A stretch of DNA of 64,000 nt from Mytilus edulis (GCF_963676685.1 NC_092349.1:21948001-22012000); one strand, 5' to 3'. Shown: positions 4,578 through 41,660, numbered from the stretch's first letter. Translations and numbers: made by a program. The notes: generated by a model from the letters alone, not told the origin.

Positions 4578-6078
4578 ATGAGAGCCTACTTCGCTATATG
4601 TGTCTTATTGATTTGTCTGTCGGGTAAGTTTGCATTACTAAAGAAAATGTCCATTTATTAAAGTCTTTATGAATATCATTTATATAGTCATGTTTATAAA
4701 TTTCCTGTTAACAATAATTTGAATTCTTCGAAAAACTAAGGATTTTCTTACCCCAGACATAGATTACCTTTGGCGCACAACATTTTAGAATTTAATTCTG
4801 AGCTTCACTGATGAGTCTTCTGTAGACCAAGCGCGCGTCTGACGTATTAAATCATAATCCTGGTACCTTTTAGAACTATTCATATTTCTTCATAAGGTTT
4901 GAACTTGTATTCTTATATCTACACTAAAGTAAGAGTACGGAAGCGTCAAAAAATATAATTAGAAACATTAGGAAATGTAGTAAGTCTGCCAATGAATAAC
5001 AAAATCTCACTTAAATCTCAGTTTCAAACTGTAGTGATAGATCATTAAACGAAACTTGTAATGTCTTTTGTAAAATTTATCATAACATTACATTGCTTTG
5101 AAAAAAGAGGTCAACTCTTCAGTCTTTTTTTTATACAATAGTGGGTGCCCGATGTTGGCGTGTGGACTCTCTTTCTGTTAAGTGTCTGGAATTGATTAGT
5201 TTGAAATATTTAGGAGCCGTTGACTATACAAGATAGGTCATATTTTTAGTGTGAACATTTGATAAGCTATTACATGTATTTTGTGAGCTAGTACGTCTAA
5301 ATGTATTTTCATAAAACAATCATTTACTTTCGTGCGTCCGTAGCCTTTATCATAATTGGTCAAAGTCAAACATTTGGAAACTAATCATATGGAATACACA
5401 TAAACACGCATATTTTTTTTTTGACGAACTCAAAAGATCAACTTCTGCATCTTCAAAGAAGAATTTAAGAACATATTTGAATAAGATTAATCACAAACCA
5501 ATCAATACAGAGCTGACGTATTTCCGTCGTTTCCTCAAACAAAACATAATATCACTTCTTAATTTTAAACTTTCTTACCTGTCATATAAGTTTTAGATAT
5601 ACTGGGTTTTGTATTAAACAATTGGATTATGCTATATCAAACACTTACGTAATCTCTCTTATGCGTCATGTGAAGATATTGCGTTCGCTGTCCTTTTACC
5701 CGTTAACTTAATTTCCGACCATCAAATCACCAATTAATGTTGTCGAAGCTTTAAATAAAACACATTTATTATCTTTCAAACAGCGATATAATAATTTCCT
5801 ATTCTGTTGATATAGCATCATCAAATGTACTATCAAATATATAGTTATAGTAAAACGTCTTTTCAATGAAAATCGTAACCTTATTTTTGTGATGTTTTAA
5901 TTAACAATTACAATATATTTTAGGTTTGGAGAATACTGATGCTGTGAAGTGCTTTAAAAGTTATTGTAGTCCTAGAGGTGATAGTTGCAGATCCGTATGT
6001 CGTTCCCATTATTGTGGCAGTAAATATCAATGTGTCGAAGGAAGGAAATGCTGCTGTGATGGTTGTAGACATAATTAA
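4578..6078 (+). CDS. Secreted 10-Cys peptide, paralog 1 (66 aa precursor; defensin/mytilin-like spacing)
   Basis: Exons 4578-4623 (G|gtaagt, phase 1) and 5924-6078 (tttag|). MRAYFAICVLLICLSGLENTDA-VKCFKSYCSPRGDSCRSVCRSHYCGSKYQCVEGRKCCCDGCRHN*. Acceptor ttccag| at 4565; possible non-coding exon 1 donor at 4249. Absent from the ORF track. Confidence 0.93.
4690..4880 (+). repeat. Degenerate hammerhead-bearing (retrozyme-type) repeat in intron of paralog 1
   Basis: CTGATGAGTCTTCTGTAGAC-CAAG-CGCGCGTCTGACGT at ~4808-4845; the GAAA core is mutated; flanks match the other copies at 16.3, 22.1 and 24.1 kb. Confidence 0.75.
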
Positions 6079-9000
6079 TAACCAGAAATAAACAGAACAT
6101 CAAATTGTGAACCGTGTAGATATAAGCATATTAAAATATTGCATAATCATGTATTATGTAAAAGAAAATTATTTGGTGAATTATTCTGATTTTTATAAAT
6201 TTCTTTTATATTGCAATTTTTTAGAAAGTTTATGTTAGTTATTGCTTGTTTTTTCAACCTCCTTAAAACCCCCAATTTTTACTCGTTTTACAGAAACTAC
6301 TACGAAGCCGAACTTATTAAGGACGTGAAACATAAAATTTAGTCAAATTGTATCAGTTTAAATATGAATTAATGCAGTAGTGAACCAGTGTACGTATCAT
6401 ATCAATCGACTACGAATAGGTTACAAAGAAAAATTAATAAAACTGAATGTATCGACAGGGTAAAATGTTTCTAGCAGTAAAAAGATGTGGTATGATTCAC
6501 AATGATACAACACATTTTAAGAGACCAAAGTCATTGAAGTTATGTTGCAACTACAGGTCACAGTACGATCGTCAACAATCAGTTAAACCCATATCACGTA
6601 GCAAGCTATATAAGTCCCCGTAAAGACTTATGCTAAACAATCCAACGGCCTGGTGTACAAAACAACAAACATAAAAACAAACATGATACCCATCAACAAG
6701 CTAAAACCATTGAAGCACAGGCTCTCTCTACTTAGAATAGGCATATACATAATTAGACTTTTAACCATGCAACAATAACACGTTAACACGTATTTAAAAG
6801 TCAGTGAAAATTATGCGTTCCTCACCCACTATGCGAATTCAAACTCAACCAAAAGGTAATAATCGGGAAATACGACATTTTAGTTGACAAATTTAGAGAA
6901 GAGAAATATATGATGGGTATCTAAAGAAATAAGTCTTGAAAACCCTGTCTTTATTAGTTGTTCTGCCTTATTACTCTGCTGGAGCAGTTTAATCAATAGA
7001 GCTCGTGCGTGTTCATGAATTGACCAAAATTACCTGTTATGTGCAGTGATTGGGTTTAAAAGTTTAATGTGTAATTGTTCTTTAGGATTCAGGTTTAAAT
7101 ACAGATTCAGGTAATAGTCTACACTGTACTTAGCTGTGTACCCAAAATGTCTACATGATATCGAGCAGTTATGGAACTTAAATCTTTCTTTGTAAACTTT
7201 ATTTTTTCAAATTGCTTCAAAATGTTTTTTTTTCAGTTTTGACATATTCTATACTAAAACTACATATCAGAGTTATTTCCGCTTCTGCATTTGACAATAG
7301 TGATGTATAATTGTAAATATCTTACCGGTTATCATAATGATCAGTTTTATATTGAATTCATATACTTTGTCCACCAATAGAAATATAAGAAGAACTTCAT
7401 ACGTCAAAGACAAGGTTTAACCTATGAGTATTTGCTTAGCTTGATTATCCATAGAAACCATAAACTTTATAGTTATATATATATATATGTGTGTGGTGAA
7501 TGAGTTATATCACCATATCCCAAACTTTATTACAGGTTAATTTAAATATAAAAGGGAGAATTTTCCAATTAGATGTCAACGTGCCCTATCAAATAAGATA
7601 TATGTGGTACGGCAAACTATTTAGCTATAATATTTTGTCGATATCTTATATGGTTTCTAAGGAGAAGCACTCGCCAGTAAACTTAATCTTGACGTACATA
7701 TATAGATCATTGAGCGAGAGTTTTGTTTTATAAACTTCAAATTGAGAAGTAGGTCAAGGTAAAATTTTACGATCTCGATTTTGACCATTTCTATCATCTC
7801 TTTTCTGGTATATAATGACTTCAATGGATCTTTTTTATTAGAATGCAGACATATTACCTTAAAAAAAAGGAATTGACATTTTGTAATGGAAAAGTGCAAA
7901 TAGCAACTTCCCTTCGTTAATATTTGAATTCGCACATAACAGTAATAGCTAGTTAAAAATGTTAAGATATATATAAACCTTTTAAGTTTCTACAATCAAA
8001 TACCTATCAAATAGTTCAACTCATCACTTGTCTACTACATAAATTATAGAAAGATATATAAAAAAAACACTCAACTGCACAAACAATTCACATAACATAA
8101 AGTCTAGAACGACAACATTGATATGTAATAAAACTGTCACTAGAAAAGAAATCCTCTTTATATTAACACTGTTGTTGATCAACCTAACCTTTCGTAATGG
8201 GAAAACAAACGTTTATGTAACAGATCCCACCTATAAATTGATAAAATTTTAATATTGTATCAACGTAATATTGATGACATTTTTACCAATTGTATCTGTT
8301 TGTTTTGTTCACAGATCGTTGTCACTATAATTAAATTTGATGCGACTGTAATGCAAGGGAGGCGTTAAGCTATCTTTATAATCAGGTTAAATCCACCATT
8401 TTCTACATAAGAAAATGCCTGTACCAAGTCAGGAATATGACAGTCGTTATCCATTCGTTTGATGTGTTTGGGCTTTTGATTTTGCCCTTTGATAAGGGAT
8501 CTTCCGTTTTGATTTTTCCTCAGACTTCAGTATTTTTGTGATTTTACTTTTTATATAAATAAGAAGTTGTGGTGTGAGTGCCAATGAAAAAACGCGCAAT
8601 GGGTATTCTCCTACGAGTATGTGTACACTTTGGCATTGTATGTTACCGGTTTTTTCTCTCGTTGATTTCAAAACGCTCAATAGAGTAGATAACGAGTTAC
8701 TCACTTTTGTAAACTGAGATCGTTTTTATTCTTTTTAATTTACTTATATGAGCTGCTGTTTGTCGGTCATTATGGAAAAACAATCATTTTATATAACACT
8801 TTCACCAAAAATGCATTTTGTATAATTTTTTCGCTATTTGGCTATGGTGTAGGCAGTTTTATTTTTTACTTTTGACTTTAAAAGTCCCTTTGGTGTCCTT
8901 CCCCTTTCTTTTGCTAAAGTATTTTTTTATGACAATCTGATGTAAATAATATAATAGGTATAGAACTCTTATAGAATATTTTTCATCATTATTTGGAAAG

Positions 9001-11448
9001 AATGGATCGGTACGGAAACTTTCAAATAAAGGACAAGGTATGATACGGGACGTTTTTGGCCCCTCTCAAAATAAGCTCATATTCATATCATTGATAGCCT
9101 TTATATAGAAACTTGAGAAAACAATGATTTTTGTATGTTCGGTCAAGGGATGGTTGCCTAGCAACGATTTTATTAAAAATCAAAATAATCTCTTATGGAC
9201 AGTATTATCTAAACAAATGAACTCAATTCCAAATGTTATTGTTTACTTTATAGGAACCTGAAGCTACGACCGAATGTTCACGTTAAATTTCAATGAATTA
9301 AAATACTTTGCAACAACCTAGCAACAAGATTGTTGCCTAGCAACAGTTCAAATTTTCGTCAGTTTTCCCTCTGGGATATCAAATAATAGCAATATTTGTA
9401 GATTTTAAAATCTAAATTGGTGTTTAGACATATATGGTTGATCAGTCATCATTATTTGTTTTGTGGATGTTGATATCAAGCATAGCAACACAAATATTTC
9501 TTAGCAACATACAAAAACTGATAATTAGAGAAATGTGAGCACAATCATATTATTGTACAAATAAAAATAAAAACAAAAAGATTACATATAAGAATACATA
9601 ACTGTTAGAAATAAAAGTAATTTCCATTGAATTTCATATCTATCAACAACCTTTCAATAAACAATATTGTGTCTAGCAACAGTTAAATAATGATTCTTTT
9701 TTTTTTAATCTCAAGCATGAGTTTTGGTAATTTTTAAAAACTTTTTTTCGCACTGTTTACACTATATTATTGATATCTTCATCAATCGTCTTTTATTAAG
9801 AGGTGTATATTTTGCAAAGCAACACAAATGTTGCTAAGCAGCTATCAATCATGTTTAAATTAAATACAACTACTATTTTCATTGTACAGATAAACACTCG
9901 TCCGATTTTCTAGTTCTGTTTAAAAGACTTGATAGAAATAAAAAAAGTCAGTTCAATTGTAACTTTTCTCAGTAACTATCATACTGACATCCAGCTAAAG
10001 CATATGCAGAAGAGAAGATTGCCATATCGACATTGTTTGCTTTACTGTAAATAATAATCATAAAATTATGTAGTTTGTGCCATTTATGGATTGATTTAAG
10101 AAAGTTAATTTAAAGTGATGATATTTTTTCATATCAGATTTCATTCATACGTTTGTACATAGTATTGGTAAGTGTCAATTTCATATTTAACCATCGGCGT
10201 TCACATACAAATAACTCATGAGTAATTCTCTTGTTGATACACTTTTATTCTAATAAATAGACTTTCACATGAACTTGTATGAGTCAGCAGTTATTGTTGA
10301 TGTTCTTTACATTAGTAATACATGTAATAACAAATTGAGTAATAAAAAAGAACTTTTAGGGGAACTTATCTTTATAAACAATAGTAAGAGTTATAAATAA
10401 AGCATAGACTGCCTTACCATTAAACTACATTTAAACACAAAGCGACTTAAAATACTATTGAAAAATGAGTAGCGGATCACAAAGTATTCTATAACAAAAG
10501 CGTGTTACTTCTAGAATTCGATTTTTATCTGTTAGGGAACTGTTAATCAATTACAGGGACATTTTAAATGCGTTACAACGATTGCAAAGTTCAGTGTTTG
10601 TCAACACTTCATATAAGGAAAATGCGTAAAAAAGGTGACCTCCATGAACTATAACATTTTTCTCTAAAACATATTATAATGCCTGATTTCTTGAAATTAA
10701 CACACAACGTCTCTGATAGATAGTTGTCACAGTTGCAAACAGTAATAACAATGTACTAGGCATAAAATATTTTACTAAAACTCTACATCTTAAATTGATA
10801 AGATATCTTAAACGTGCTTTAATAGTAAGTTACTGTTGTAACCAATAGTATTAATGGAAATTGACATTAGTTAAAAGACACACTTGTTTTATTTTTGAAA
10901 ATTATAGAAATGTGATTACATATTGAATGTGAAAACAGCACGTCTCTAAAATGACCTTCTTTCAATTTAGATTATAACAGCAATTTACATCTTATGAATT
11001 AACAATAATAGTTGCTAGGAGTTTGTTTAAATCATTCATAGACACGTTTAATGTCATTCTTCTACATATGAATCAACACTTTCTACGTCAGACATGTCAG
11101 ACTCTTCAGGAACATCTTTAGCATTGAGTATGGAACTCAAAAACTTAAAGGCAACATTAATATAATAGTGTTATTTTAAAATTCATCCTTGAAAGCCAAA
11201 TTTTCTTACTGCTGAGTGCAAGTGCACCCCAGTAGCCAGTACTTCGGTACTGGCATGAAAATACGGATTTTTTGTGTTATTAAAATTTACTGTTACAAAA
11301 TGATAGAAATTATTATAAATTAAGGAATGTATCTCCCTCATGCAAAGCTCTGATTCCTTTCACGGATTTGGCTATACTTTTAGGACCTTTTGGATTATAG
11401 CTCTTCATCTTTTATATAAGCTTTGGATTACAAATATTTTGGCCACGA

Positions 11449-11492
11449 GCATCACTGAAGAGACATGTATTGTCGAAATGCGCATCTGGTGC
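11449..11492 (+). ncRNA. Type I hammerhead ribozyme, copy 1
   Basis: Stem I GCATCA/TGGTGC; core CTGAAGA; stem II GACA-tgtat-TGTC; GAAA; palindromic stem III TGCGCA; cleavage triplet ATC (cut after 11486). Confidence 0.92.
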
Positions 11493-11798
11493 AAGAAAAT
11501 TGGTACCGTTAATTTTATTACTACCACTGGGTCGATGCTTCTGTTGGTGGACTATTAGTCCCCGAGGGTATCACCAACTAGTAGCCAGTACTTCGGTACT
11601 GGCATGAAAATACGGATTTTTTTGTGTTATTAAAATTTACTGTTACAAAATGATAGAAATTATTTTAAGTTAAGGAATGTATCACCCTCATGCAAAGCTC
11701 TGATTCCTTTCACGGATTTGGCTATACTTTTAGGACCTTTTGGATTATAGCTCTTCATCTTTTATATAAGCTTTGGATTACAAATATTTTGGCCACGA

Positions 11799-11842
11799 GC
11801 ATCACTGAAGAGACATGTATTGTCGAAATGCGCATCTGGTGC
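11799..11842 (+). ncRNA. Type I hammerhead ribozyme, copy 2
   Basis: Identical to 11449-11492. Confidence 0.92.
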
Positions 11843-12148
11843 AAGAAAATTGGTACCGTTAATTTTATTAATACCACTGGGTCGATGCCTCTGCTGGTGG
11901 ACTATAAGTCCCCGAGGGTATCACCACCCCAGTAGCCAGTACTTCGGTACTGTCATGAAAATACGGTTTTTTTGTGTTATTAAAATTTACTGTTACAAAA
12001 TGATAAAAATTATAATAAATTAAGGAATGTATCTCCCTCATGCAAAGCTCTGATTCCTTTCACGGATTTGGCTATACTTTTAGGACCTTTTGGATTATAG
12101 CTCTTCATCTTTTATATAAGCTTTGGATTACAATTATTTTGGCCACGA

Positions 12149-12192
12149 GCATCACTGAAGAGACATGTATTGTCGAAATGCGCATCTGGTGC
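12149..12192 (+). ncRNA. Type I hammerhead ribozyme, copy 3
   Basis: Identical to 11449-11492. Confidence 0.92.
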
Positions 12193-12498
12193 AAGAAAAT
12201 TGGTACCGTTAATTTTATTACTACCACTGGGTCGATGCTTCTGCTGGTGGACTATTAGTCCCCGAGGGTATCACCACCCCAGTAGCCAGTACTTCGGTAC
12301 TGGCATGAAAATACGGATTTTTTGTGTTATTAAAATTTACTGTTACAAAATGATAGAAATTATTATAAATTAAGGAATGTATCTCCCTCATGCAAAGCTC
12401 TGATTCCTTTCACGGATTTGGCTATACTTTTAGGACCTTTTGGATTATAGCTCTTCATCTTTTATATAAGCTTTGGATTACAAATATTTTGGCCACGA

Positions 12499-12542
12499 GT
12501 ATCGCTGAAGAGACATGTATTGTCGAAATGCGCATCTGGTGC
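12499..12542 (+). ncRNA. Type I hammerhead ribozyme, copy 4
   Basis: Same core; stem I 5' strand is GTATCG, two transitions that still pair with TGGTGC as G:U wobbles. Confidence 0.88.
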
Positions 12543-16906: not shown

Positions 16907-17954
16907 ATGAGAGCCTTCTGTGTCTTTTGCATCGTATTGATCTGTTTGTCAGGTAAGCTCATATCATTATCACAAAAACAATTGAAAGATATGAATGTTA
17001 ATAGATATTGCAGTTTTTCTACTATTAAAACCACGATTAAAATGTCAATGAACTCCATTTTTTGTATGGTTGCCAACGAACAAGTGTCCATGACAGAAAA
17101 ATATATCAATATCAATTGGTTGTTTAACTGAAATACTGAGATAATCATCAGACTTCCAAAAGAAATTGCATTTAAATAGCTGCATTAACTACTGTTACTG
17201 AAAACTCTTCAAGTAAGTACGAAGAGCGATGGCACACTATGGCAGGATTGCTTGATACGAACTCAAACTGGTACTTTTGTACTATTACAAGAATAATAAC
17301 CAACACAAGCTTTCAAATTTTACTCATTAAAGCCGTTAACCAACCCTTTCCGTTTTTTTTTTTATATTCAAATAAAACAAAACATTAGATGTTAACGATA
17401 TTGGCTGCTCCTGTTTTTTTTTCAGGTTTTTTTTTTTTTTTCGTTTTTTTTTTCTTCATAAGTTCCGTTCCTTATAAACTATCAATTTATAACAATCTTT
17501 TAAAAAGCTTGCTGTTCAAAAATCAGTAAAGCGAACGTCCTTCATACTGATAATATGTTCTTAAATACTGCATTTAGATACAAGCCACAAGACACATGAT
17601 ACATAATCATCAATGACAAAGCGACTTAGCATGATAACAACCCCAACCCCAACATATTATAGGAAACTCACATTCTAATTATATATATATATATATATAT
17701 ATATTGTATTATTCGATTCACCTTTTATATGAAAATCAAAATCGTAACCCGACTATTTAACTGATTATCTAATGTATAAGGAACAATATGTTATAGGTTT
17801 GGATCATACTGATGCTGCTGTTAAGTGCTTCAGTAGTTACTGTAAAAACAATGATGGTTGCAGACAGGGATGTCTCGACCATGGATGTGGCTCCAAACAT
17901 TTCTGTTCTATCAACGAAAAGAAATGTTGCTGTGATGGTTGTATGTCAGAATAA
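16907..17954 (+). CDS. Secreted 10-Cys peptide, paralog 2 (67 aa precursor)
   Basis: Exons 16907-16952 (G|gtaagc) and 17797-17954 (ttatag|). MRAFCVFCIVLICLSGLDHTDA-AVKCFSSYCKNNDGCRQGCLDHGCGSKHFCSINEKKCCCDGCMSE*. AATAAA at ~18030. Confidence 0.93.
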
Positions 17955-23972: not shown

Positions 23973-25754
23973 ATGAAAGCCTATATTGGTGTTTGTTTCA
24001 TCTTATTCTGTATGACAGGTAAGTTAATTTAGCCGTACTGACAACCGTAAATGATTGTAAATATCTGAATTATTCGATATACTTGTTTTATCTTATGCAT
24101 AGATTACCTCACCCGTATTTGACACACTTTTGGAACTATGGGCCCTTAATGCTCTTCAGCTTTACACTTGTTTCGCTTTCTATCCATTTTGATATGAGCG
24201 TCAATGATGTAGACGAAACGCTCGTCTGGCCTATTTGATTACCCTTTGAAATAAAATGAATCAGAAATTCAGGATTCTAATTCATTAAATATTAAGTCAA
24301 ATTTTAAAAACGTAGCCATGTTTCATATCTTAAATGTTGTTTCCTTCGAAAACAAAACCTATTCTAACCACCTGCGTCTTCAATGGGCCTCAGGGTATAT
24401 AGATGATGTCCTCAGAGACAACAATACAAGATGGTCTGTTTATACCCGTCCGTATTGTTAGTGCTCTAGTATATGTATCATAGGCTTTTAAAATATACAC
24501 AAGACAAACTCAAGTCCAATGTTAGTAATACCTACAATTCGTTATTTGAAACACGACATGTGGTATGAAATATGTAGGAATTGTGTTGTAAATCATTTAA
24601 ATGTATGAACATCATTGTAACATTTCTAGAAGTACATTTTTGTCTGATTAAGAATTCATTTTCGAATGTTGATAAATCTGATCAGGGTAGCATGCTCTTC
24701 TTCTTCGCCTCTCTTTTCGAACCTGTTCAATTCATAACTAGGTCCAATGCTTTACATTTATTTCTATTTTCATTGCTTCGCAAAATTTGAAACATAGGAG
24801 ATAAGGCTAGTAGGCTCTATTGCAGATATTTATTTTGGGTTTGAGAACGAGATTTGCTTGATACATAGTACTTGATAGTGTTTATCTAAAATGCGACAAA
24901 ACGTACAGCTTAACCCCACAGTACGCTTTCGAATGGATATGCTTGACATGGACACGTTTGCGTTATTCATATATTACAGTATTGCGATGTGTTGTAGTTC
25001 TCAATGAATCATATATACATTAGAAACAAAGAGTCATAAAAATAGTAACCAAATCCATACTGTAAATTACGAAACATTTGATGCAGATGATTTAACTAGC
25101 ATTAATTAGTCAAGCACCCAATAACCTCATAGAGTATAAATACTAATGGTTGCTGAAATAATAAGTCTTGATCGTCAATAACATTCAACGGTACAAACTT
25201 ACAATGCAGTAACTTATGTAGGTTTCGATAAACAATATTTTGTCAGAGACTCGAGATGTTTATTTGAAATTTGATTATACAATAAACATCAAAGAGCTGA
25301 TACATTGATTAGGAACACAAATATAGTCAAACTTTGAACATGATTCATACCTGAAGGCTATACACTCTTTAGTGTCAAACATTTTAATAAATGAAATTCC
25401 ATATGATAGTAGTTCTATCTAATTCTATGACAGTAAACATAACATAGCAACTTGTGATTCCAACAGAAAGATTTAACATAATTTTGAGTTTACCAAATAT
25501 ATTGATGCAAGTATTTACATTGTGTTACTATAAATAACATTTTTTTTTTCGTTACCTGATACGTTCAAGATTGTTTTAAAAATTGTCTTATAGGATTGGA
25601 GAATACTGACGCTGCAAAAAAGTGTTTTAGTAGTGTTGACTGTGGATTCGCCATTGAAGGTTGCAGACCAGACTGTGTTAAGAAATTGTGTGTCGGTAAA
25701 GCCGAGTGCGTCGGAAATATTGAATGCTGTTGTCATGGTTGTATACTGGGATAA
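23973..25754 (+). CDS. Secreted 10-Cys peptide, paralog 3 (68 aa precursor)
   Basis: Exons 23973-24018 (G|gtaagt) and 25594-25754 (ttatag|). MKAYIGVCFILFCMTGLENTDA-AKKCFSSVDCGFAIEGCRPDCVKKLCVGKAECVGNIECCCHGCILG*. AATAAA at ~25805. Confidence 0.93.
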
Positions 25755-31219: not shown

Positions 31220-32690
31220 GAGAGACGTACAAAGGGTATATGACAATATTAAAGAGACGTACAAAAGGTATAAGACAACATTGAAGAGACTTACACAAGG
31301 TATATGACGATATTGAAGAGACCTACACAAGGTATATGACGATATTAGAGTGACGTACAAACGGTATACGACGATATTGAAGACACGTACAAAGGGTATA
31401 TGACAATATTAAAGAGACGTACAAAGGGTAAATGACGATATTGAAGAGACGTACAAACGGTATATGACGATATTGAAGAGACGTACAAAGGGAATATGAC
31501 GATATTGAAGAGACCTACACAAGGTATATGACGATATTAGAGTGACGTACAAACGGTATACGACGATATTGAAGACACGTACAAAGGGTATATGACAATA
31601 TTAAAGAGACGTACAAAGGGTAAATGACGATATTGAAGAGACGTACAAACGGTATATGACGATATTGAAGAGACGTACAAAGGGAATATGACGATATTGA
31701 AGAGACGTACAACGGGTATATGACAATATTGAAGAGACGTACAAAGGGTATATGCCAATATTGAAGAGACGTACAAAGGGTATATGACAATATTGAAGAG
31801 ACGTACAAAGGGTATATGACAATATTGAAGAGACGTACAAAGGATATATGACAATATTAAAGAGACGTACAAAGGGTATATGACAATATTGAAGAGACGT
31901 ACAAAGGGTAAATGCCAATATTGAAGAGACGTACAAAGGGTATATGACAATATTGAAGAGATGTACAAAGGGTATATGACAATATTAAAGAGACGTACAA
32001 AGGGTATATGACAATATTGAAGAGAAGTACAAAGGATATATGACAATATTGAAGAGACGTGCAAAGAGTATATGATGATATTGAAGAGACGTACAAAGGG
32101 TATATGACAATATTGAAGAGACGTACAAAGGATATATGACAATATTGAAGAGACGTGCAAAGGGTAAATGACGATATTGAAGAGACGTACAAACGGTATA
32201 TGACGATATTGAAGAGACGTACACAGGGAATATGACGATATTGAAGAGACGTACAAAGGGTATATGACGATATTGAAGAGACGTACAACGGGTATATGAC
32301 AATATTGAAGAGACGTACAAAGGGTATATGCCAATATTGAAGAGACGTACAAAGGGTATATGACAATATTGAAGAGATGTACAAAGGGTATATGACAATA
32401 TTAAAGAGACGTACAAAGGGTATATGCCAATATTGAAGAGACGTACAAAGGGTATATGACAATATTGAAGAGATGTACAAAGGGTATATGACAATATTAA
32501 AGAGACGTACAAAGGGTATATGACAATATTGAAGAGAAGTACAAAGGGTATATGATGATATTGAAGAGACGTACAAAGGGTATATGACAATATTGAAGAG
32601 ACGTACAAAGAATATATGACAATATTGAAGAGACGTACAAAGGATATATGACGATATTGAAGAGAAATGTCAAAGGAAATGACAATATTG
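31220..32690 (+). repeat. 32-bp minisatellite, ~45 units, consensus GACAATATTGAAGAGACGTACAAAGGGTATAT
   Basis: Directly visible periodicity; a 192-bp (6-unit) higher-order repeat is marked by ACCTACAC at 31321 and 31513. Confidence 0.97.
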
Positions 32691-33237
32691 AAGAGATACT
32701 AGTATGCAGAAGGTCCATGACAATATCAATGTGGCTTTGGGTCTGAAATAAAATCCATATGATTTTCAAGTAATTTTGTAAGATCTAGACCAACTATTAT
32801 CTGCTACTTCAAAATCGAGCAATCTTATAGAGACATGCATCACGAAATGACAATATTGATGAGACAGGCATAAGGAAATGACATTGACTATTGTAGGGAA
32901 ATGCAGATGAAAATGACAATATTGAAGAGATATGCAAAAGGAAATGACAATCTAAAGTAGACATACACAAGGAAAGAACAATATTAATGAGGCATTCACA
33001 AAAAATAATATTGAAGAGACATGCAGATGTAAATGACAATATTAAAGAGAAAAGCAAAAGGAAATGCTACATTATCAGCAAATTACAATAATTCAAATGT
33101 TTTGACACCTTTGTTTATCATTTAAATACTTAGAACTAACCGCTTACTTAACTGGAAAACAGACCCCTCCCGAAAGGATATCGTGTAACAATTCCTATAT
33201 CCTTTATCCGTTTCCGCTTCCGCTTCACTTAATTTAC

Positions 33238-33296
33238 TATATATAGACCATTAAATGCTACTCGTCTGTATCAAGAACTTTGTGTTATAGATACAG
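33238..33296 (+). promoter_or_regulatory. TATA box and putative non-coding exon 1 of paralog 4
   Basis: TATATATA 33238-33245; donor ACAG|GTATGT at 33296/33297. Confidence 0.6.
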
Positions 33297-33616
33297 GTAT
33301 GTTAAATAAACTTTATGTTAATGCAATTACTAATATATTTAGAAACAAATTTTCTAGCTTATATCAATCCGAGTAATTTTTTCAAGATGAATTTGTTTTA
33401 CGGATATGTGATACACAAGGTTGTTAAAACCAACTGCACAATTTTTGTGAATATTCAAACTAGAAACAGAAACAAACTGCTAATGGTATATAAGCCTAAT
33501 CTTTTTATCAGACCTGTTTGGCTACTCGGTATTGTTTGAAATCCAAGTACAGTTGAATAATAGACAGTGGAAAGTGAGTTGAATGAGTTAATATAAACAT
33601 ATTCATTTCAATTAAA

Positions 33617-33877
33617 CAGGACTACCTTTGACGCATCATGAGAGCCTACATTTGTGTTTGTTTCATCTTATTTTATTTTACAGGACTACCTTTGACGCAT
33701 CATGAGAGCCTACATTGGTGTTTGTTTCATCTTATTACATATTTTACAGAACTACCTTTGATGCATCATGAGAGCCTACATCGGTGTTTGTTTCATCTTA
33801 TTTTATTTTACAGGACTACCTTTGACGCATCATGAGAGCCTACATCGGTGTTTGTTTCATCTTATTATGTTTGACAG
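33617..33877 (+). repeat. Four tandem 64-66 bp copies of the acceptor plus signal-peptide exon (paralog 4)
   Basis: ATGAGAGCCTACAT at 33638, 33702, 33768 and 33832; only the last is followed by a GT donor. Confidence 0.95.
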
Positions 33878-35449
33878 GTGAGTTAAATTATCCGTAGAGT
33901 GTTTTTCGTTTCTATATTTTATATAGATTTGACCGTTGGTTTTCCTGTTTGAATGGTTTTGCACTGGTAATTTTTAGGGCCTGTTTAAGCTTACTGTTCG
34001 GTATGAGCAAAGGCTCCATGTTGACGACCGTACATTGACCTATAATGGTTCATTTTTACAAATTTTGACTTGAATGGAGGGTTGTTTCGTTAACAATCAT
34101 ACCACATCTTCTTAGACATGTTATATCTATTGACAAAATTAACCATGATTCCCCTTTGAAACAAAGCTGATCAAATTATTCTAATTTACTACGTATGAAC
34201 ATGAAATTTATTATGTCTCCAGCATCCATATCTTATATGTTAACTGTTCGAAAGCAATTCCTATTCTAACCAACTGCGTCCTGAATCGCTCTCAGAGTAT
34301 CCTGACAGATGTCCTCAGCGTTGTTAATCACTTTTTAAAATGTATGAACATTATTGTAACAGGTTTAGTAATTTCTTTTTTGGTCCATATTCAGACTTCA
34401 TTGTCAGATTTTTATAAATGTGATCATAGTAGCATGCTCTTCTTCTTCGACTCTCTCTTTCAAACCGGTCAAATCCATAACTAGCTCCAATCTTATACAT
34501 TTGGTTATAGTTTCATTTACACTCACCAATTTCTACATATGACTTAGAGATCAGGCTGCTTAGCCCAATATATATAGATTTGCTTGTATTGTGTACTTGA
34601 TAGTCTTCATCTAAAATTTGACTTAACGACCAGCTTAACCAACAGTAAGGTTACGAATTGAATCACTTGAAATGAACACGTTTGCGCTTTTAATATATAT
34701 TACAGTGTTTTAGTTCTCAATGAGTCAAATATACATTTGAAAAAAGGACATGGAATTATAAACACCAATCCATACTTTATATTAGAAAACATTTGATGCA
34801 GATATTAACATTAATCATTTAAGTATTCCATAAGCTCGTATAACATTAATCCATGTTTTTGCTGAAATTAATCGGCACAAACTTACAATACGGTAACTGA
34901 AGCGCATTTTGATAAACAATATTTTACAGTGAAACTCGAGATCTCGAGATCTAATAATAAAAGAAACATCATAGAGCTGATACAACCGTTTATGAACATA
35001 AAAATAGTCAAAAATTTAACAGGATTCTTACCTGGGGGTTAATCAGTCTTTGATTTCACAAATTTTAATAAATGAAATTCCATATGCTAGTAGTCCTTTC
35101 TAATTTTATGACAGTAAACACTTTATAGCAACTTGTGATTCCAATGGAAAGATTCACTATTTTGATTTTACTTAATCTATTGATGTAAGTATTAACACTT
35201 TGTAAAAATAAATAACATTTCTGAATTTTTATTCGTTACCTGATACTCATAATATTGTTTTAACAATTGACTGTAATTTCTCTTATAGGATTTGAGTATA
35301 CTGACGCTGCAAAAAAGTGTTTTAGTATGGTTGACTGTGGAATCTTTGCTGGTGGTTGCAAGCCATACTGTGTTGAAAAATTATGTGTCGGTACAGCAGA
35401 ATGCGTCGGAAACATGGAGTGCTGCTGTGGAGGTTGTATATTTGGATAA
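33832..35449 (+). CDS. Secreted 10-Cys peptide, paralog 4 (68 aa precursor)
   Basis: Exons 33832-33877 (G|gtgagt) and 35289-35449. MRAYIGVCFILLCLTGFEYTDA-AKKCFSMVDCGIFAGGCKPYCVEKLCVGTAECVGNMECCCGGCIFG*. Confidence 0.9.
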
Positions 35450-35757
35450 TCAGAAGAGAAATACAGGACAAGAAGATCATTTACCAACTTATTTACCCGC
35501 AATAAATCATGCAATTTGAAAATTGTTTTATTAGTTTTAATAAAAGTGAATATATAGTAAATAAAAATAATTGAAATAATACATACATCACAGTTTCACC
35601 GATGCTTGTATTTAAGATCATTGATTATGTTGATTGTATTTATCCAATTAAACATACAATAAAAGATATTACATACAATCAGGTCTGCTCAAATTCTTGA
35701 CTAGTTCGTTAAATTCATATTTTTAGACAAACATTATCCCTACCACACATAGAAATG

Positions 35758-35965
35758 AGGGGTCTCGGTGGCCGAGTGGTCTAGTTAGTAACTACTGTAA
35801 TGAGGGCTGTGAGTTCGAACCCCGCTCGTGTGGATGCACTCGATTCCAATCTAAATTTCCAGGGTTGTCAGTTTCAATATCGAAGGTCGGTGATTTTCTC
35901 CGGGCAGTCGAAAAAGCCCAAAATTGGCACTTAAAAGGAGGGTTAAACACCAACAATCAATCAAC
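35758..35965 (+). mobile_element. tRNA-derived SINE
   Basis: A box TGGCCGAGTGG, B box GAGTTCGAACC, 3' tail ...AAACACCAACAATCAATCAA; does not close as a cloverleaf. Confidence 0.75.
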
Positions 35966-37764
35966 ACATATAAAAAAACGGTCTTACTTGGATTCAAAAC
36001 AAAAAATAATGACCAACATAGATACAATTGTCTTGTTTAAGGGACATGTTATCAATATTCTGAATACAAAACTAATTTGATTAAAACAAACTAACATAAA
36101 CAAGAATCTAGATTTTTCAAATGACAGCATAATTGTTACATTTAGCATGCTCAGGGAAACAACGGTGGTCATCGATTAATCAATCTGTACCTCTATTCAT
36201 ACAAGACTGATGTCATATGGAAGCCTCTTAAAATAATGAAAGAAATCTAGCTTTATCATTGAAATTTACTGTCCATAAAGAGGTGTACTATTACTGATTG
36301 ATTTAAAGTTAAGTGACAATGTGTATCGCATTATGAAATAATAGATACAACAGATATTTTAAGTTCTGCCTCAAATCTTACATCTGGAAAATAGAGAATG
36401 AGGGTCGATTGACACAAAATATAACGACCAAAATATGATCTTGGATTACCAACTTGGAACGTTCCATTTCAGACGCCCGTAGTACATATGTATCTCTCTG
36501 CTGGTAAATTATTTCAGACCTTGTATTTCCCATCAAGATTTTTGATAGATTGTTGTGGTTTTAAGGAAGATATGAAAATGACCAATCCAACTGGTTAAGT
36601 TTTACTCATTCCTTTGGAAATTGTATGGACAACATTACGAGTTGATTGACCATTATGGTATATATGTTTGACAGGTGGCGTCTGTAGCGTCGGATGTGTC
36701 CTAAATATTGTATCCACAATCCCGTTCTGTAGTAAAAGAGGGACGAAAGATATCAAAGGGACAGTCAAACTCATAAATCTAAAACAAACTGACAACGCCA
36801 TGGCTAAAAATGAAAAAGACAAACAGAAAAACAATAGTACACATGACACAACATAGAAAACTAAAGAATAAACAACACGAACCCCACCAAAAACTAGAGG
36901 TGATCTATCGTGTTTTATACCTTAGTATTTATCATTCGGTTATTTAGTGGGTATGAGGGTAAGGCTTTGTCAGATTGTCTTTGATTTATGATTTTTAATA
37001 TTTCTTATGTATCTCCTTTCTCTATTTTTAAGTATGCATCAAATGTCAAAATCCTATTAATAACCTGACATCTTTCGTGAAACAATTGAAAATGACCAGT
37101 CTTAAATTATCTCATTTTTGTATATGTATGAACAGAAAAAGGACGATAAAGATTTCCCATCTTTATACTAGATACCTAAATATATACTAGTATACACGAT
37201 TTATTAACTGGTTGTCTTCTTTTTTACTAAGAATCTGGCTTAAATTCTAGCTACAACTCTTTCTACCGTTTAATATGAGCTGAACAAATATGATATAATG
37301 TCGAAAAAAAAAATCTTAAAGTTTATCAAAAAATAATTTCATCATAATCATTGCAATTTTCTAGCTATAACACACATTTTTAATATTATTCAAATTTTTA
37401 ATTTACATTTAAGGCCATTTATGGAATCCTTTGAAAGTACACTATGAATAACACCCGATGTATGCACGCAAGCCACTTGATTCTTCGTGGTAGTATATCT
37501 GCCTTTCAAATTTTATTTAAGCTTTCTGGAAAGCAAAAATCGATAAACAACAGATTAACAGTCCTATATTTGTTTTTTTTGTTTGTCTGGTAGTTTTTTG
37601 TTTGGTTTCAATATATTGTGTCTAGTTGTAGGATTTAGAATCCTTTTATTTAAATCATTATCTGCACAGAAACGTTAAAATGAATACAATTCATAAGTCG
37701 TAGAGAAAAAGATTGTCATAAAGGAGGGGCGAAAGCTACCAGAGGGACATTGAAACTCATAGAT

Positions 37765-38890
37765 CGTACAAAGGGTATATGACAATATTAAAGAGACGTA
37801 CAAACGGTATATGACGATATTGAAGAGACGTACAAAGGGAATATGACGATATTGAAGAGACGTACAAAGGGTATATGACGATATTGAAGAGACGTACAAC
37901 GGGTATATGACAATATTGAAGAGACGTACAAAGGGTATATGACAATATTAAAGAGACGTACAAAGGGTATATGACAATATTGAAGAGACGTACAAAGGGT
38001 ATATGACGATATTGAAGAGACGTACAACGGGTATATGACAATATTGAAGAGACGTACAAAGGGTATATGACAATATTGAAGAGATGTACAAAGGGTATAT
38101 GACAATATTAAAGAGACGTACAAAGGGTATATGACAATATTGAAGAGACGTACAAAGGGTAAATGCCAATATTGAAGAGACGTACAAAGGGTATATGACA
38201 ATATTGAAGAGATGTACAAAGGGTATATGACAATATTAAAGAGACGTACAAAGGGTATATGACAATATTGAAGAGAAGTACAAAGGGTATATCGTCGCTG
38301 GGCTTCTAAAATGTCGTATATGACTTTTTTGGCTAAAAATACTTTTTGACACCAATGGTCTGGGCGGGAGGAAATCTTTGGTATTACAAAATAGCATACA
38401 GTTAGACCAATCAAAATGTGTGAAATAAGACATATTACAAAATTGCCAATGTCAGTTCTTTGTAAAGTTTGCTTCAAAAATGTTGTATGAAAACTTGAAA
38501 ATCGTTGTAGAATGGCTTTGGGGAAAAAATAATTGTACATTTCTTTATTTCTGTGAAAATCATTTAAGTTCTTGGATAATCCAGAAATGTCAAAGTTTTT
38601 ATTTCACTGCTATTTACAAAAATGTTCAAGTTCACATACGACATTTTGGAAGCATGCATTTTGCCAAAATTTTCAAAGCCTGTTTGTGAGATATTTTTTT
38701 CTTGAAAAAATTGTTATTTACAACATTTTAGAAGCCCAGCGACGATATGATGATATTGAAGAGACGTACAAAGGGTATATGACAATATTGAAGAGACGTA
38801 CAAAGGATATATGACAATATTGAAGAGACATACAAAGGGTATATGACGATATTGAAGAGAAATGTCAAAGGAAATGACAATATTGAAGAG
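37765..38890 (+). repeat. Second 32-bp minisatellite block, interrupted by a MITE
   Basis: Same consensus as 31220-32690. Confidence 0.95.
38293..38744. mobile_element. 452-bp MITE (non-autonomous DNA transposon)
   Basis: TIR CGTCGCTGGGCTTCTAAAATGT / ACATTTTAGAAGCCCAGCGACG, flanked by ATAT on both sides; empty site at 32550-32553 in the other duplicate. Confidence 0.92.
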
Positions 38891-39432
38891 ATACTAGTAT
38901 GCAGAAGGTCAATGACAATATCAATGTGGCTTTGGGTCTGAAATAAAATCCATATGATTTTCAAGTAATTTTGTAAGATCTAGACCAACTATTATCTGCT
39001 ACTTCAAAATCGAGCAATCTTATAGAGACATGCATCACGAAATGACAATATTGATGAGACAGGCATAAGGAAATGACATTGACTATTGTAGGGAAATGCA
39101 GATGAAAATGACAATATTGAAGAGATATGCAAAAGGAAATGACAATCTAAAGTAGACATACACAAGGAAAGAACAATATTAATGAGGCATTCAAAAAAAA
39201 TAATATTGAAGAGACATGCAGATGTAAATAACAATATTAAAGAGAAAAGCAAAAGGAAATGCCACAATATCAGCAAATTACAATAATTCAAAAGTTTTCA
39301 CACTTTTGTTTATCATTTAAATACTTACAACTAACAGCTTACTTAACTGGAAAACAGACCCCTCCCGAAAGGAGATCGTGTTACAATCCCTGTATCCTTT
39401 ATCCGTTTCCGCTTCCGCTTCACTTAATTTAC

Positions 39433-39491
39433 TATATATAGACCATTAAATGCTACTCGTCTGTATCAAGAACTTTGTGTTATAGATACAG
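39433..39491 (+). promoter_or_regulatory. TATA box and putative non-coding exon 1 of paralog 5
   Basis: Duplicate of 33238-33296; donor ACAG|GTATGT at 39491/39492. Confidence 0.6.
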
Positions 39492-39810
39492 GTATGTTAA
39501 ATAAACTTCAGGTTAATGCAATTACTAATATATTTAGAAACAGATTTTCTAACTTATATCAATCCGAGTAATTTTTTCAAGATGAATTTGTTTTACGGAT
39601 ATGTGATACACAAGGTTGTTAAAACCAACTGCACAATTTTTGTGAATATTCAAACTAGAAACAGAAACGAACTGCTAATGGTATATAAGCCTAATCATTT
39701 TATCAGACCTGTTTGGCTACTCGGTATTGTTTGAAATCCAAGTACAGTTGAATAATAGACAGTTGAAGTGAGTTGAATGAGTTAATATAAACATATTCAT
39801 TTCAATTAAA

Positions 39811-40071
39811 CAGGACTACCTTTGACGCATCATGAGAGCCTACATTTGTGTTTGTTTCATCTTATTTTATTTTACAGGACTACCTTTGACGCATCATGAG
39901 AGCCTACATTGGTGTTTGTTTCATCTTATTACATATTTTACAGAACTACCTTTGATGCATCATGAGAGCCTACATCGGTGTTTGTTTCATCTTATTTTAT
40001 TTTACAGGACTACCTTTGACGCATCATGAGAGCCTACATCGGTGTTTGTTTCATCTTATTATGTTTGACAG
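39811..40071 (+). repeat. Four tandem copies of the signal-peptide exon (paralog 5)
   Basis: Duplicate of 33617-33877; first ATG 39832, last ATG 40026. Confidence 0.95.
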
Positions 40072-41660
40072 GTGAGTTAAATTATCCGTAGAGTGTTTTT
40101 TCGTTTCTATATTTTATATAGATTTGACCGTTGGTTTTCCTGTTTGAATGGTTTTGCACTGGTAATTTTTAGGGCCTGTTTAAGCTTACTGTTCGGTATG
40201 AGCAAAGGCTCCATGTTGACGACCGTACATTGACCTATAATGGTTCATTTTTACAAATTTTGACTTGAATGGAGGGTTGTTTCGTTAACAATCATACCAC
40301 ATCTTCTTAGACATGTTATATCTATTGACAAAATTAACCATGATTCCCCTTTGAAACAAAGCTGATCAAATTATTCTAATTTACTACGTATGAACATGAA
40401 ATTTATTACGTCTCCAGCATCCATATCTTATATGTTAACTGTTCGAAAGCAATTCCTATTCTAACCAACTGCGTCCTGAATCGCTCTCAGAGTATCCTGA
40501 CAGATGTCCTCAGCGTTGTTAATCACTTTTTAAAATGTATGAACATTATTGTAACAGGTTTAGTAATTTCTTTTTTGGTCCATATTCAGATTTCATTGTC
40601 AGATTTTTATAAATGTGATCATAGTAGCATGCTCTTCTTCTTCGACTCTCTCTTTCAAACCGGTCAAATCCATAACTAGGTCCAATCCTATACATTTGGT
40701 TATAGTTTCATTTACACTCACCAATTTCTACATATGACTTAGAGATCAGGCTGCTTAGCCCAATATATATAGATTTGCTTGGTATTGTGTACTTGATAGT
40801 CTTCATCTAAAATTTGACTTAACGACCAGCTTAACCAACAGTAAGGTTACGAATTGAATCACTTGAAATGAACAAGTTTGCGCTCTTAATATATATTACA
40901 GTGTTGTAGTTCTCAATGAGTCAAATATACATTTGAAAAAAGGACATGGAATTATAAACACCAATCCATACTTTATATTAGAAAACATTTGATGCAGATA
41001 GTTTAATAAACATTAATCATTTAAGTATTCCATAAGCTCGTATAACATTAATCCATGTTTTTGCTGAAATTAATAACATTCAACGGCACAAAATTACAAT
41101 ACGGTAACTGAAGCGCATTTTGATAAACAATATTTTACAGTGAAACTCGAGATCTCGAGATCTAATAATAAAAGAAACATCATAGAGCTGATACAACCGT
41201 TTATGCACATAAAAATAGTCAAAAATTGAACAGGATTCTTACCTGGGGGTTAATCAGTCTTTGATTTCACAAATTTTAATAAATGAAATTCCATATGCTA
41301 GTAGTCCTTTCTAATTTTATGACAGTAAACATTTTATAGCAACTTGTGATTCCAATGGAAAGATTCACTATTTTGATTTTACTTAATCTATTGATGTAAG
41401 TATTAACACTTTGTAAAAATAAATAACATTTCTGAATTTTTATTCGTTACCTGATACTCACAATATTGTTTTAACAATTGACTATAATTTCTCTTATAGG
41501 ATTGGAGTATACTGACGCTGCAAAAAAGTGTTTTAGTATGGTTGACTGTGGAATCTTTGCTGGTGGTTGCAAGCCATACTGTGTTGAAAAATTATGTGTC
41601 GGTACAGCAGAATGCGTCGGAAACATGGAGTGCTGCTGTGGAGGTTGTATATTTGGATAA
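40026..41660 (+). CDS. Secreted 10-Cys peptide, paralog 5 (68 aa precursor; mature peptide identical to paralog 4)
   Basis: Exons 40026-40071 and 41500-41660. MRAYIGVCFILLCLTGLEYTDA-AKKCFSMVDCGIFAGGCKPYCVEKLCVGTAECVGNMECCCGGCIFG*. Confidence 0.9.

Follow-up and report, generated by a model that had tools for sequence, protein, structure and literature searches.

The window, i.e., the whole stretch of 64,000 nucleotides of Mytilus edulis DNA which we analyzed, carries five genes for small peptides with ten cysteines. On balance we consider it probable that the locus represents a real gene family, that one of its genes (G4), for which we show expression, and its relatives encode peptides with a CS-alpha-beta fold, and that the family is distinct from the families named so far.

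We reconstructed every gene model from the DNA itself. All five genes (G1 to G5) are located on the plus strand in the same orientation and consist of two coding exons each (Table 1). The original prediction had placed five co-oriented genes at these positions, each with a 46-nt signal-peptide exon, a phase 1 intron and a second exon of 155–161 nt, and the rebuilt models agree with it in all these points. The introns have GT donors and pyrimidine-rich AG acceptors and interrupt the 16th codon (Gly) after its first nucleotide (1+2). The precursors start with M-R/K-A and contain a hydrophobic core in a 22-aa leader with T-D-A at its end. The mature parts comprise 44, 45, 46, 46, and 46 aa with exactly ten cysteines each, and the predicted framework C-x4/5-C-x5/6-C-x3-C-x4-C-x5-C-x5/6-CCC-x2-C was recovered in five of five translations. 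The entire mature peptide is encoded by one exon and the stop codon is found three residues past the last cysteine, leaving no C-terminal extension.

Table 1. Coordinates of the five genes and of the repeated regions, counted from the first nucleotide of the window
Feature	Position	Strand	Remarks
G1 signal-peptide exon	4578..4623	+	ATG + 15 codons + 1 nt; GT donor at 4624
G1 second coding exon	5924..6078	+	155 nt; mature 44-aa 10-Cys peptide 5944-6075
G2 signal-peptide exon	16907..16952	+	
G2 second coding exon	17797..17954	+	158 nt; mature 45-aa peptide 17817-17951
G3 signal-peptide exon	23973..24018	+	begins M-K-A
G3 second coding exon	25594..25754	+	161 nt; mature 46-aa peptide 25614-25751
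Tandem duplication with G4 and G5	32550..43917	+	5.2-kb blocks 32550-37700 and 38745-43917, identity 96.8%
Four-unit tandem array upstream in G4	33616..33878	+	64-bp units
G4 signal-peptide exon	33832..33877	+	last unit of array; junction confirmed by RNA contigs
G4 second coding exon	35289..35449	+	161 nt; mature 46-aa peptide 35309-35446
Four-unit array upstream of G5, as in G4	39810..40072	+	last unit = G5 exon 1 (40026-40071)
G5 signal-peptide exon	40026..40071	+	last unit of four-unit array
G5 second coding exon	41500..41660	+	161 nt; mature 46-aa peptide 41520-41657

Spliced transcripts were demonstrated for the G4/G5 type only. When RNA data were searched for junction reads, as had been proposed with the original prediction, the exact exon 1–exon 2 junction of G4 (33877|35289) across a GT..AG intron was present in contigs from two studies, namely a 412-nt contig of run X1 (depth 380) and a 368-nt contig of run X4 (depth 52). 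The coding part of these contigs is identical to G4, and the 3′ UTR extends to at least 35616. The G5 precursor differs from that of G4 by a single residue located in the leader, and both genes lie in a tandem duplication. By our own estimate the identity of the two blocks fits the range of allelic divergence in mussels, and therefore either G4 or G5 could be an assembly duplicate. Each unit of the array upstream in G4 combines an ATG with an acceptor-like site and a sequence similar to a signal exon; a GT donor follows the last unit alone, and it is this unit that serves as exon 1. An RNA contig covers 33794–33875 in unspliced form.

As a five-gene cluster the locus had been delimited too narrowly. 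The five genes stand, yet the cluster is larger, with at least eight family genes on the plus strand within ~120 kb of C6, the chromosome of the window. Three of these members flank the window at 15 and 38 kb upstream and at 17 kb downstream. A chance origin of the five open reading frames can be excluded because one 10-Cys framework is common to all of them, because a profile built from the five genes finds this exon in the genome at no fewer than 17 loci (E values between 1e-19 and 1e-2) and because pairs of paralogues show dN/dS values of 0.2–0.8. The family is under purifying selection, and 9–10 cysteines are invariant. Relatives with a named organism come from M. galloprovincialis, M. edulis, M. 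californianus, and M. trossulus only, and all are annotated as hypothetical or uncharacterized proteins. The closest annotated relative of G2, the hypothetical protein VDI03103.1 of M. galloprovincialis, shares the splice structure and is identical to the downstream paralogue, not to G2.

The mature peptides are predicted to adopt a CS-alpha-beta fold (defensin or scorpion-toxin-like), the scaffold which had been proposed from the cysteine spacing. AlphaFold models of two independently modelled members which are 46% identical, G1 (pLDDT 85; E2-5 H14-21 E24-31 E35-41) and G3 (pLDDT 71; E7-12 H24-29 E36-39 E43-49 in exon-peptide numbering), were built on shallow alignments of 12–21 sequences and both show a beta-alpha-beta-beta order with a regular helix packed against a three-stranded sheet. 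The C-x3-C motif sits in the predicted helix (residues 14–21 of G1 and 24–29 of the G3 exon peptide), and the cysteine triplet, including its first and third cysteine, in the last predicted strand. By far most of the structural neighbors are scorpion toxins, drosomycin and plant defensins. The best one, 6aty, has a Z-score of 5.8, the maximum and yet less than the tool states as comfortable for small proteins, and an rmsd of 1.3 Å over 38/38 residues (Foldseek TM 0.71/0.80); it is followed by Ts1, CsE-v2, AmmTx3, drosomycin and plant defensins, and by mytilin at Z 2.2. A Z-score of at least 2 was reached by just 54 of 48,161 chains, the majority of them CS-alpha-beta proteins, and with the G1 model the first eight VIA matches belong without exception to this group. 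Weak hints from sequence comparison all agree with it: alpha-KTx toxins were matched at E 1.3–2.7, which is not significant, and the Atlas gave Toxin_5, Defensin_2, and ASABF clusters at 0.77–0.79.

For both models the best structural matches are scorpion alpha-KTx and long-chain sodium-channel toxins (6aty, 6ay7, 1npi, 1jza, 6ggz), with rmsd values of 1.3–2.2 Å over 37–42 residues and 19–32% identity, mostly due to cysteines. These toxins are, however, arthropod venom proteins with three to four disulfides and without a significant sequence match to the mussel peptides. Drosomycin and the plant defensins (Z 3.0–3.8) share the beta-alpha-beta-beta topology and an N-terminal strand which is tied into the sheet by a disulfide.

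The arrangement of the disulfides can be approached through relatives with two domains. In their domain 1 Asp replaces Cys1 and Ser replaces the middle cysteine of the triplet (Cys8), the other eight cysteines being kept, and in domain 2 both Cys1 and Cys8 are present. Cys1 and Cys8 are jointly missing from domain 1 in P0007, in P0010 and in seven more members of the cluster of P0010, a co-loss which probably goes back to a single evolutionary event. Because both are lost together in these tandem-domain relatives, the sequences support a fifth disulfide Cys1–Cys8, as had been suggested for the N-terminal cysteine and the middle one of the triplet. MGD-1 and MGD-2 are CS-alpha-beta peptides with eight cysteines and four disulfides; they come from the same host genus, are likewise secreted after removal of a signal peptide, and have in common with the new family the motifs C-x3-C (helix) and C-x-C-x2-C (end). 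Of the ten cysteines of the new family, eight fit the disulfide plan of MGD-1, which would give Cys2–Cys6, Cys3–Cys7, Cys4–Cys9, and Cys5–Cys10, and the fifth bond would run from Cys1 in the N-terminal strand to Cys8 on the outer face. We infer this disulfide map. In contrast to MGD-1 and MGD-2, the new peptides have an extra N-terminal strand bearing Cys1 and an extra cysteine within C-x-C. In drosomycin and the plant defensins with four disulfides the N-terminal cysteine pairs with the last cysteine, whereas in the new family the co-loss pattern favors pairing with the middle cysteine of the triplet; in five-disulfide plant defensins such as Petunia PhD1 the extra bond is found elsewhere. 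A cysteine filling C-x-C is also known from mytilid CS-alpha-beta peptides, the CCC mytilins of Perna (Greco et al. 2020, PMC7168163), in which the middle cysteine was modelled facing away from the helix. Those peptides have nine cysteines, the middle one being unpaired with proposed intermolecular bonds (PMC7168163), whereas the extra N-terminal cysteine of the new family gives an even number.

By sequence the family belongs neither to MGD, mytilin or myticin nor to WAP. For 11 members, P0004 among them, no Pfam match was obtained at E<=10, WAP included. Genome-wide searches with PF01097 (Defensin_2) gave matches on C4, C7, and C2 and those with PF10690 (Myticin-prepro) gave loci on C10, C1, C12, and C11 only, in neither case on C6. 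With profiles from the same genome hhalign yielded probabilities of 0.2% for myticin, 0.4% for mytilin (six mytilin-type sequences) and 0.7% for MGD defensin. We rejected a myticin identity on the basis of the missing PF10690 match, the hhalign value, the ten instead of eight cysteines and the absence of a C-terminal extension. Mytilins are encoded by four-exon genes and carry an anionic extension at the C-terminus (PMC7168163); the missing extension, the mature peptide in one exon and the hhalign value spoke against this identity, also with regard to the Perna CCC mytilins. An MGD or Defensin_2 identity was discarded on the Pfam and hhalign results and the location on C6 versus C4 and C7; here, too, the new family lacks the C-terminal extension. 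The original claim that these peptides do not belong to an 8-Cys mussel family is therefore borne out.

It could still be argued that the genes form a divergent subfamily of mytilins, myticins or MGD defensins with two cysteines gained. The C-x3-C ... C-x-C-x2-C skeleton is common to them, the start C-F-x-S-Y-C of G1 and G2 resembles the myticin start C-T-S-Y-Y/W-C, the CCC motif already occurs in Perna mytilins, and mytilin 2eem aligns with 37% identity over 30 residues (Z 2.2). We regard such a descent as very unlikely in view of the hhalign values below 1% against all three same-genome profiles, of family models that recover their own genes on C10, C1, C4, and C7 and none on C6, and of the differing gene and precursor structure (PMC7168163). 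A relationship to WAP-type (four-disulfide-core) protease inhibitors or crustin-like proteins is suggested by UniRef, which calls the paralogue A0A8B6GUE8 (P0004) a "WAP domain-containing protein", and in our own reading of the pattern the C-x5-C-x5-CC spacing is like the WAP core. Yet PF00095 matched none of the 11 members, not even P0004, both models have a regular helix on a three-stranded sheet, and no WAP, elafin, or SLPI chain is among the structural neighbors listed from the 48,161 chains compared. We rejected a WAP identity, and this relationship has hardly any probability left.

Liu et al. 2022 are said to have described three subfamilies of myticofensins in Mytilus coruscus, and DeMartini et al. 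2017 reportedly described mfp-16 to mfp-19, Cys-rich proteins in the byssus cuticle of M. californianus. That our family is one of these and thus already described seems rather improbable to us, though it has to be taken seriously. Myticofensins are recently named peptides of the same genus and were reported to comprise three separate families of CS-alpha-beta peptides resembling defensins (PMC10138031), and putative Cys-rich proteins forming a family were reported from the cuticle gland (PMC7018715). Furthermore, the C4 paralogues P0006 and P0024 contain a region of 56–72 aa with 15–16 mol% Tyr and 16–21 mol% Lys which resembles foot proteins. This region is, however, absent from all five peptides of the window. 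The single myticofensin qPCR primer that could be tested, Mc-myticofensin-R, matches an 8-Cys MGD-like gene on C7 with 0 mismatches and has no match in the window, and the published fragment B3-beta, with a loop of seven residues and without a CCC motif, is not matched in this genome. No named homologue was found in protein collections of 5.8 and 1.84 billion sequences or in the literature compared, in which this primer and fragment B3-beta stood for the myticofensins. In agreement with the original prediction the family is apparently unnamed within this scope and adds to the rich peptide repertoire of mussels.

In our reading the region belongs to a tandem gene cluster for a family of small secreted peptides which is confined to Mytilus. 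Each gene is expected to give rise to a precursor of ~66–68 aa, from which a 22-aa signal peptide would be removed by a presumed cut after T-D-A to release the 44–46 aa peptide, and this is predicted to fold as a CS-alpha-beta domain with the added N-terminal strand. The most likely function would be that of an extracellular host-defence effector with a specific target, like the defensins which bind lipid II or membrane lipids; for a role in defence as such we would put the chances slightly below even. A simple disruption of membranes by cationic charge is the less likely mode, since G1 alone is strongly cationic (net charge of the mature peptide ~ +5.8, the other four between −0.3 and +0.9).

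The peptides might instead use the same fold as specific ligands that are not antimicrobial, such as signalling peptides, modulators of ion channels, or deterrents of a toxin-like kind. Such a use of the fold has precedents in brazzein, in the SCR/LURE peptides of plants and in scorpion toxins, the nearest structural neighbors are potassium- and sodium-channel toxins, G2–G5 are near neutral, and G3–G5 are also rather hydrophobic (GRAVY +0.4 to +0.7). In addition, the last two residues of some C5 paralogues are G-K, which could signal amidation as it does in bioactive peptides. Nevertheless, a common fold is no proof of common function, G1 is cationic, and the other CS-alpha-beta families of mussels, animals not known to be venomous, act in host defence (PMC7168163, PMC7356231). 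We consider this alternative unlikely. More far-reaching, and doubtful in its entirety, is the reading of an undescribed mytilid-restricted family with a new type of fifth disulfide, whose members are mostly uncharged specific binders and whose paralogues were recruited into other secretions. If true, the new bond would join the added N-terminal strand to a normally solvent-facing residue inside C-x-C, the mostly uncharged members would be specific binders and not membrane-active AMPs, and tandem duplication of domains as well as fusion to a DOPA-type Tyr/Lys-rich region would have brought paralogues into other secretions, e.g., the byssus coating.

Two further observations concern the individual members. 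Membrane-active AMPs do not usually have the near-neutral charge shown by four of the five peptides, and the signal exon is better conserved than the mature exon, with 90% versus 76% identity between G3 and G4 and 77% versus 69% between G1 and G2.

A pattern scan of the whole window in all six frames found the framework C-x3-C-x4-C-x5-C-x5/6-CCC-x2-C in exactly five ORFs, all of them on the forward strand, and 5′ of each ORF there is a 46-nt exon which starts with ATG and is followed by GT (genes G1–G5, see table). After joining of the exons by script the frames remained open and gave precursors of 66–68 amino acids, and every gene has a phase-1 intron between its two exons. The leader has 22 residues (M-R/K-A, a hydrophobic core and a T-D-A end) and the mature part 44–46 residues with ten cysteines; there is neither a pro-region nor an extension, and five disulfides are proposed within these 44–46 residues. 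The original prediction of five co-oriented genes with a 46-nt signal exon, a phase-1 intron and a 10-Cys peptide was correct to the base when the models were rebuilt. The joined precursors were used for translation within the script alone; searches and folds took exon 2 or the mature part. The splice model of the family is independently supported by the annotated models VDI03103.1, VDI12287.1 and VDI68790.1, since these show the same leader organization. Outside the cluster, an ORF at 59397-59921 matches the fibronectin type III domain (E 1.3e-5); it probably belongs, as an exon, to a different gene further downstream.

Coordinates of the 10-Cys peptide genes and of associated features (window positions unless a chromosome is given)
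Feature	Position	Strand	Description
G1	4578-4623 + 5924-6078	+	signal exon + second coding exon
G2	16907-16952 + 17797-17954	+	signal exon + second coding exon
G3	23973-24018 + 25594-25754	+	signal exon + second coding exon
G4	33832-33877 + 35289-35449	+	signal exon + second coding exon
G5	40026-40071 + 41500-41660	+	signal exon + second coding exon
64-bp unit, four copies, before G4	33616-33878	+	acceptor-like site, ATG and signal-exon sequence per unit
64-bp unit, four copies, before G5	39810-40072	+	same make-up as array before G4
Acceptor-like sites before start codons	4560-4577, 16889-16906, 23955-23972, 33814-33831		
32-bp minisatellite arrays	31221-32696, 37765-38292, 38745-38891		upstream of G4 (46 copies) and G5 (16 copies)
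62-bp array related to the 32-bp minisatellite	23254-23515		before G3
MGD-like defensin exon matching primer	C7:5179845-5179958		loci L055 / L060

RNA reads were checked at G4, since G5 reads would align to it as well, and statements on expression refer to the G4/G5 type. A 412-nt contig of run X1 (depth 380) spans 33794-33875 and 35287-35616, and a 368-nt contig of run X4, which comes from another study, has the same junction (depth 52). Both omit 1411 nt with GT..AG ends, exactly the predicted intron of G4, and because the read depth in this intron is close to zero except at 33908-34138 the contigs represent spliced RNA. The original prediction had proposed junction reads as a check, and the splice between exons 1 and 2 of G4 is thus present in both runs. 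The X1 contig differs from the window at four positions, all in the 3′ UTR, and therefore encodes the G4 peptide. The genes form a real family, whose G4/G5 type is spliced and expressed. In the intron segment 33908-34138 itself the depth is very high in each of the four runs, loose ends are numerous and the base differences are consistent; the segment looks like a dispersed repeat that is transcribed elsewhere and not like a part of the gene.

In the 64-bp arrays before G4 and G5 a GT donor follows the last copy only. The X1 contig begins inside the third copy before G4 and runs through the last acceptor-like site, and short X4 contigs span 33643-33736, so that the 5′ UTR of G4 seems to contain upstream out-of-frame ATGs. 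A pyrimidine-rich acceptor-like site ending in CAG lies 12–18 nt 5′ of every start codon, and in VDI03102.1 (M. galloprovincialis, partial) and CAG2217620.1 (M. edulis, fused) the residues E-N-C-T stand in frame right before the start methionine. Together these features suggest that at least some of the genes have an additional non-coding exon further 5′.

G4 and G5 sit in a 5.2-kb tandem block with 96.8% identity, which could stem from a recent duplication or consist of two alleles assembled in tandem. The minisatellite arrays and the 62-bp array are placed 0.5–2.6 kb 5′ of signal exons. Elsewhere in the window, positions 11225-12571 hold 3.8 copies of a 350-nt unit with 96% identity; a whole-window scan at gathering thresholds gave no Rfam family there, hammerhead ribozymes included.

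The peptides are predicted, in our view with good likelihood, to adopt the cysteine-stabilised alpha-beta (CS-alpha-beta) fold. AlphaFold2 gave the order strand-helix-strand-strand for the exon-2 peptide of G3 (12-row alignment, pLDDT 71) as well as for the mature peptide of G1 (46% identical to G3; 21-row alignment, pLDDT 85), and in both models the helix holds the C-x3-C motif and the last strand the cysteine triplet. In an all-against-all structural search with the G1 model 54 of 48,161 chains reached Z>=2. Scorpion toxins and a centipede CS-alpha-beta toxin fill the first eight places, with 6aty as best neighbour (Z 5.8, rmsd 1.3 Å, 38/38 residues), next come drosomycin, plant defensins and the SCR-type chain of the plant receptor complex 5gyy, and further neighbours are copsin, eurocin, termicin, heliomicin and mytilin. 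The G3 model retrieved the same families at Z 3.3–4.2. Foldseek aligned the G1 model with 6aty (TM-scores 0.71/0.80) and with agitoxin 2 (0.67/0.75), although its E-values were never significant. Structure prediction and Foldseek had been proposed as a check on the defensin scaffold, and both models with their neighbours agree with it. A sequence search of the PDB found no match with the larger alignment and only alpha-KTx toxins, all at E>1, with the smaller one; the ESM Atlas returned only sub-threshold leads (0.77–0.79).

On this scaffold a fifth disulfide had been predicted between the extra N-terminal cysteine (Cys1) and the cysteine that fills the C-x-C motif (Cys8, the middle of the triplet). 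Two unnamed ENA/Logan ORFs, P0007 and P0010, agree with this pairing. In both, an 8-Cys domain is followed directly by a 10-Cys domain, and the P0010 cluster has seven near-identical members which are also two-domain. According to the MAFFT alignment domain 1 has Asp at Cys1 and Ser at the middle triplet cysteine and keeps the other eight, which are spaced like those of a four-disulfide MGD-type defensin (MGD, 8-Cys mussel defensin); domain 2 has all ten. A Cys1-Cys8 bond predicts just this joint absence and presence, whereas with the alternative pairing Cys1-Cys10 plus Cys5-Cys8 the loss of Cys1 and Cys8 would require the remaining cysteines to re-pair. In Perna mytilins the middle cysteine of the CCC motif was modelled facing away from the helix (Greco et al., PMC7168163), the side on which an added edge strand would lie, so that the geometry fits as well. 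This evidence is indirect and probably goes back to a single evolutionary event, and on it we somewhat favour a strand-to-strand Cys1-Cys8 disulfide. As P0007 and P0010 match this genome weakly (E 0.006) they probably come from another species. Adjacent 8-Cys and 10-Cys domains in one protein are a natural experiment on adding a disulfide to the defensin fold. The family would be a new variety of CS-alpha-beta peptides, with ten cysteines and a probable new strand-to-strand disulfide.

The family had been predicted to be distinct from the 8-Cys mussel families, and this holds. At E<=10 none of 11 members had a Pfam match, and a single-sequence search with G1 gave no match. Genome-wide, the Pfam profile Myticin-prepro located myticin and mytilin genes on chromosomes C10, C1 and C12 and Defensin_2 located defensins on C4, C7 and C2, neither having a match on the window's chromosome C6; exons elsewhere in this genome encode peptides which we take to be myticin A and mytilin B. 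Profile–profile comparison (hhalign) with profiles from the same genome gave probabilities of 0.2% for myticin, 0.4% for mytilin and 0.7% for MGD. Because of these values below 1% and the Pfam placements off C6 we rejected membership in the three families; they share the fold class with G1–G5 but not sequence membership, and G1–G5 have no extension. The UniRef label 'WAP domain-containing protein' of one paralogue was also rejected, having neither a Pfam match nor support from the models; no WAP-type chain was among the listed structural neighbours of the G1 and G3 models.

The family had further been put forward as a candidate for an undescribed one. It appears unnamed, there being no named relative in two protein collections, and we consider it rather unlikely that a name already exists; the comparison with myticofensin covered one qPCR primer and one published fragment. 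Myticofensin (Liu et al. 2022) is cited in PMC10138031, a survey of the known mussel peptide families, as three new CS-alpha-beta defensin-like families. The qPCR primer 'Mc myticofensin' (PMC11898675) fits with 0 mismatches a gene at C7:5.18 Mb that encodes an MGD-like 8-Cys peptide and is probably the orthologue of one myticofensin; the window contains no site for it at <=3 mismatches. B3-beta, the sole fragment in print, lacks the CCC motif and has a 7-residue loop. The primer-matched and B3-beta myticofensins, at least, would thus belong to a different family; subfamilies A and C stay candidate names. The 15-aa B3-beta fragment, too short for such a search, had no match in the 1.37-Gb genome. 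A second lead points to the byssus. In the paralogues on C4 (L015 / L029, C4:55009500; P0006, P0024), of which M. californianus and M. edulis have orthologues, an insert of 56–72 aa (15–16 mol% Tyr, 16–21 mol% Lys) separates the signal peptide from an 11-Cys form of the domain, and this region resembles DOPA-type mussel foot proteins. PMC7018715 mentions mfp-16 to mfp-19 as a Cys-rich cuticle-gland protein family, and a link between the C4 paralogues and Cys-rich byssus cuticle proteins is possible.

A profile of the exon-2 peptides found at least 17 loci in the 1.37-Gb assembly, in which the window occupies C6:21948001-22012000. Besides the five window genes, three members on C6 have the same strand as G1–G5 (C6:21909615, 21933055, 22029088) and one, 0.8 Mb away, the opposite strand; the others are on C5 (three), C9 and C4 (two each) and C10 (one). 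Two members have the same sequence as proteins of M. galloprovincialis, which together with the exons for myticin A and mytilin B points to a Mytilus of the galloprovincialis/edulis complex. Every relative with an organism name in two very large protein collections belongs to one of four Mytilus species and is labelled hypothetical or uncharacterised; a small number of unnamed ORFs from metagenomes or Logan matched as well, and among named matches the family appears restricted to Mytilus. These collections yielded no spliced model of the G3, G4 or G5 type, and of G4 only the unspliced exon-2 ORF P0001 was present; gene prediction can therefore miss such small two-exon peptide genes, as this family illustrates. 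Paralogue pairs have dN/dS values of 0.21–0.79, and 9–10 cysteines are invariant across the family. The signal exon is better kept than the mature exon (90% vs 76% identity for G3/G4, 77% vs 69% for G1/G2), as is usual for secreted effector families.

Mussels withstand infections lethal to other bivalves, and antibiotic leads are sought among their cysteine-rich peptides. A host-defence effector would be the single most likely role, at slightly less than even chances, given the predicted fold and the secretion signal, the expansion of the genes in tandem, their restriction to one lineage and the many other defence peptides that mussels have. The mature peptide of G1 is cationic (+5.8), G2–G5 are near-neutral and G3–G5 rather hydrophobic, which speaks for the binding of a specific target rather than for an attack on membranes driven by charge; the same properties are also compatible with toxin-like, signalling or structural roles, which these peptides may have instead. 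An extra multigene CS-alpha-beta family, with members from strongly cationic to neutral, would enlarge the mussel peptide repertoire; its scaffold is very compact and probably also very stable, and the family is well worth study at the bench. The field's view of mussel immunity would be unchanged, one family being added to the known pattern without surprise.

The three C5 paralogues (L007, L009, L033; C5:44.76-45.23 Mb) end in G-Y-G-K or H-G-K, which could be a C-terminal amidation signal, and two of them have CCC-x-C in place of CCC-x2-C.
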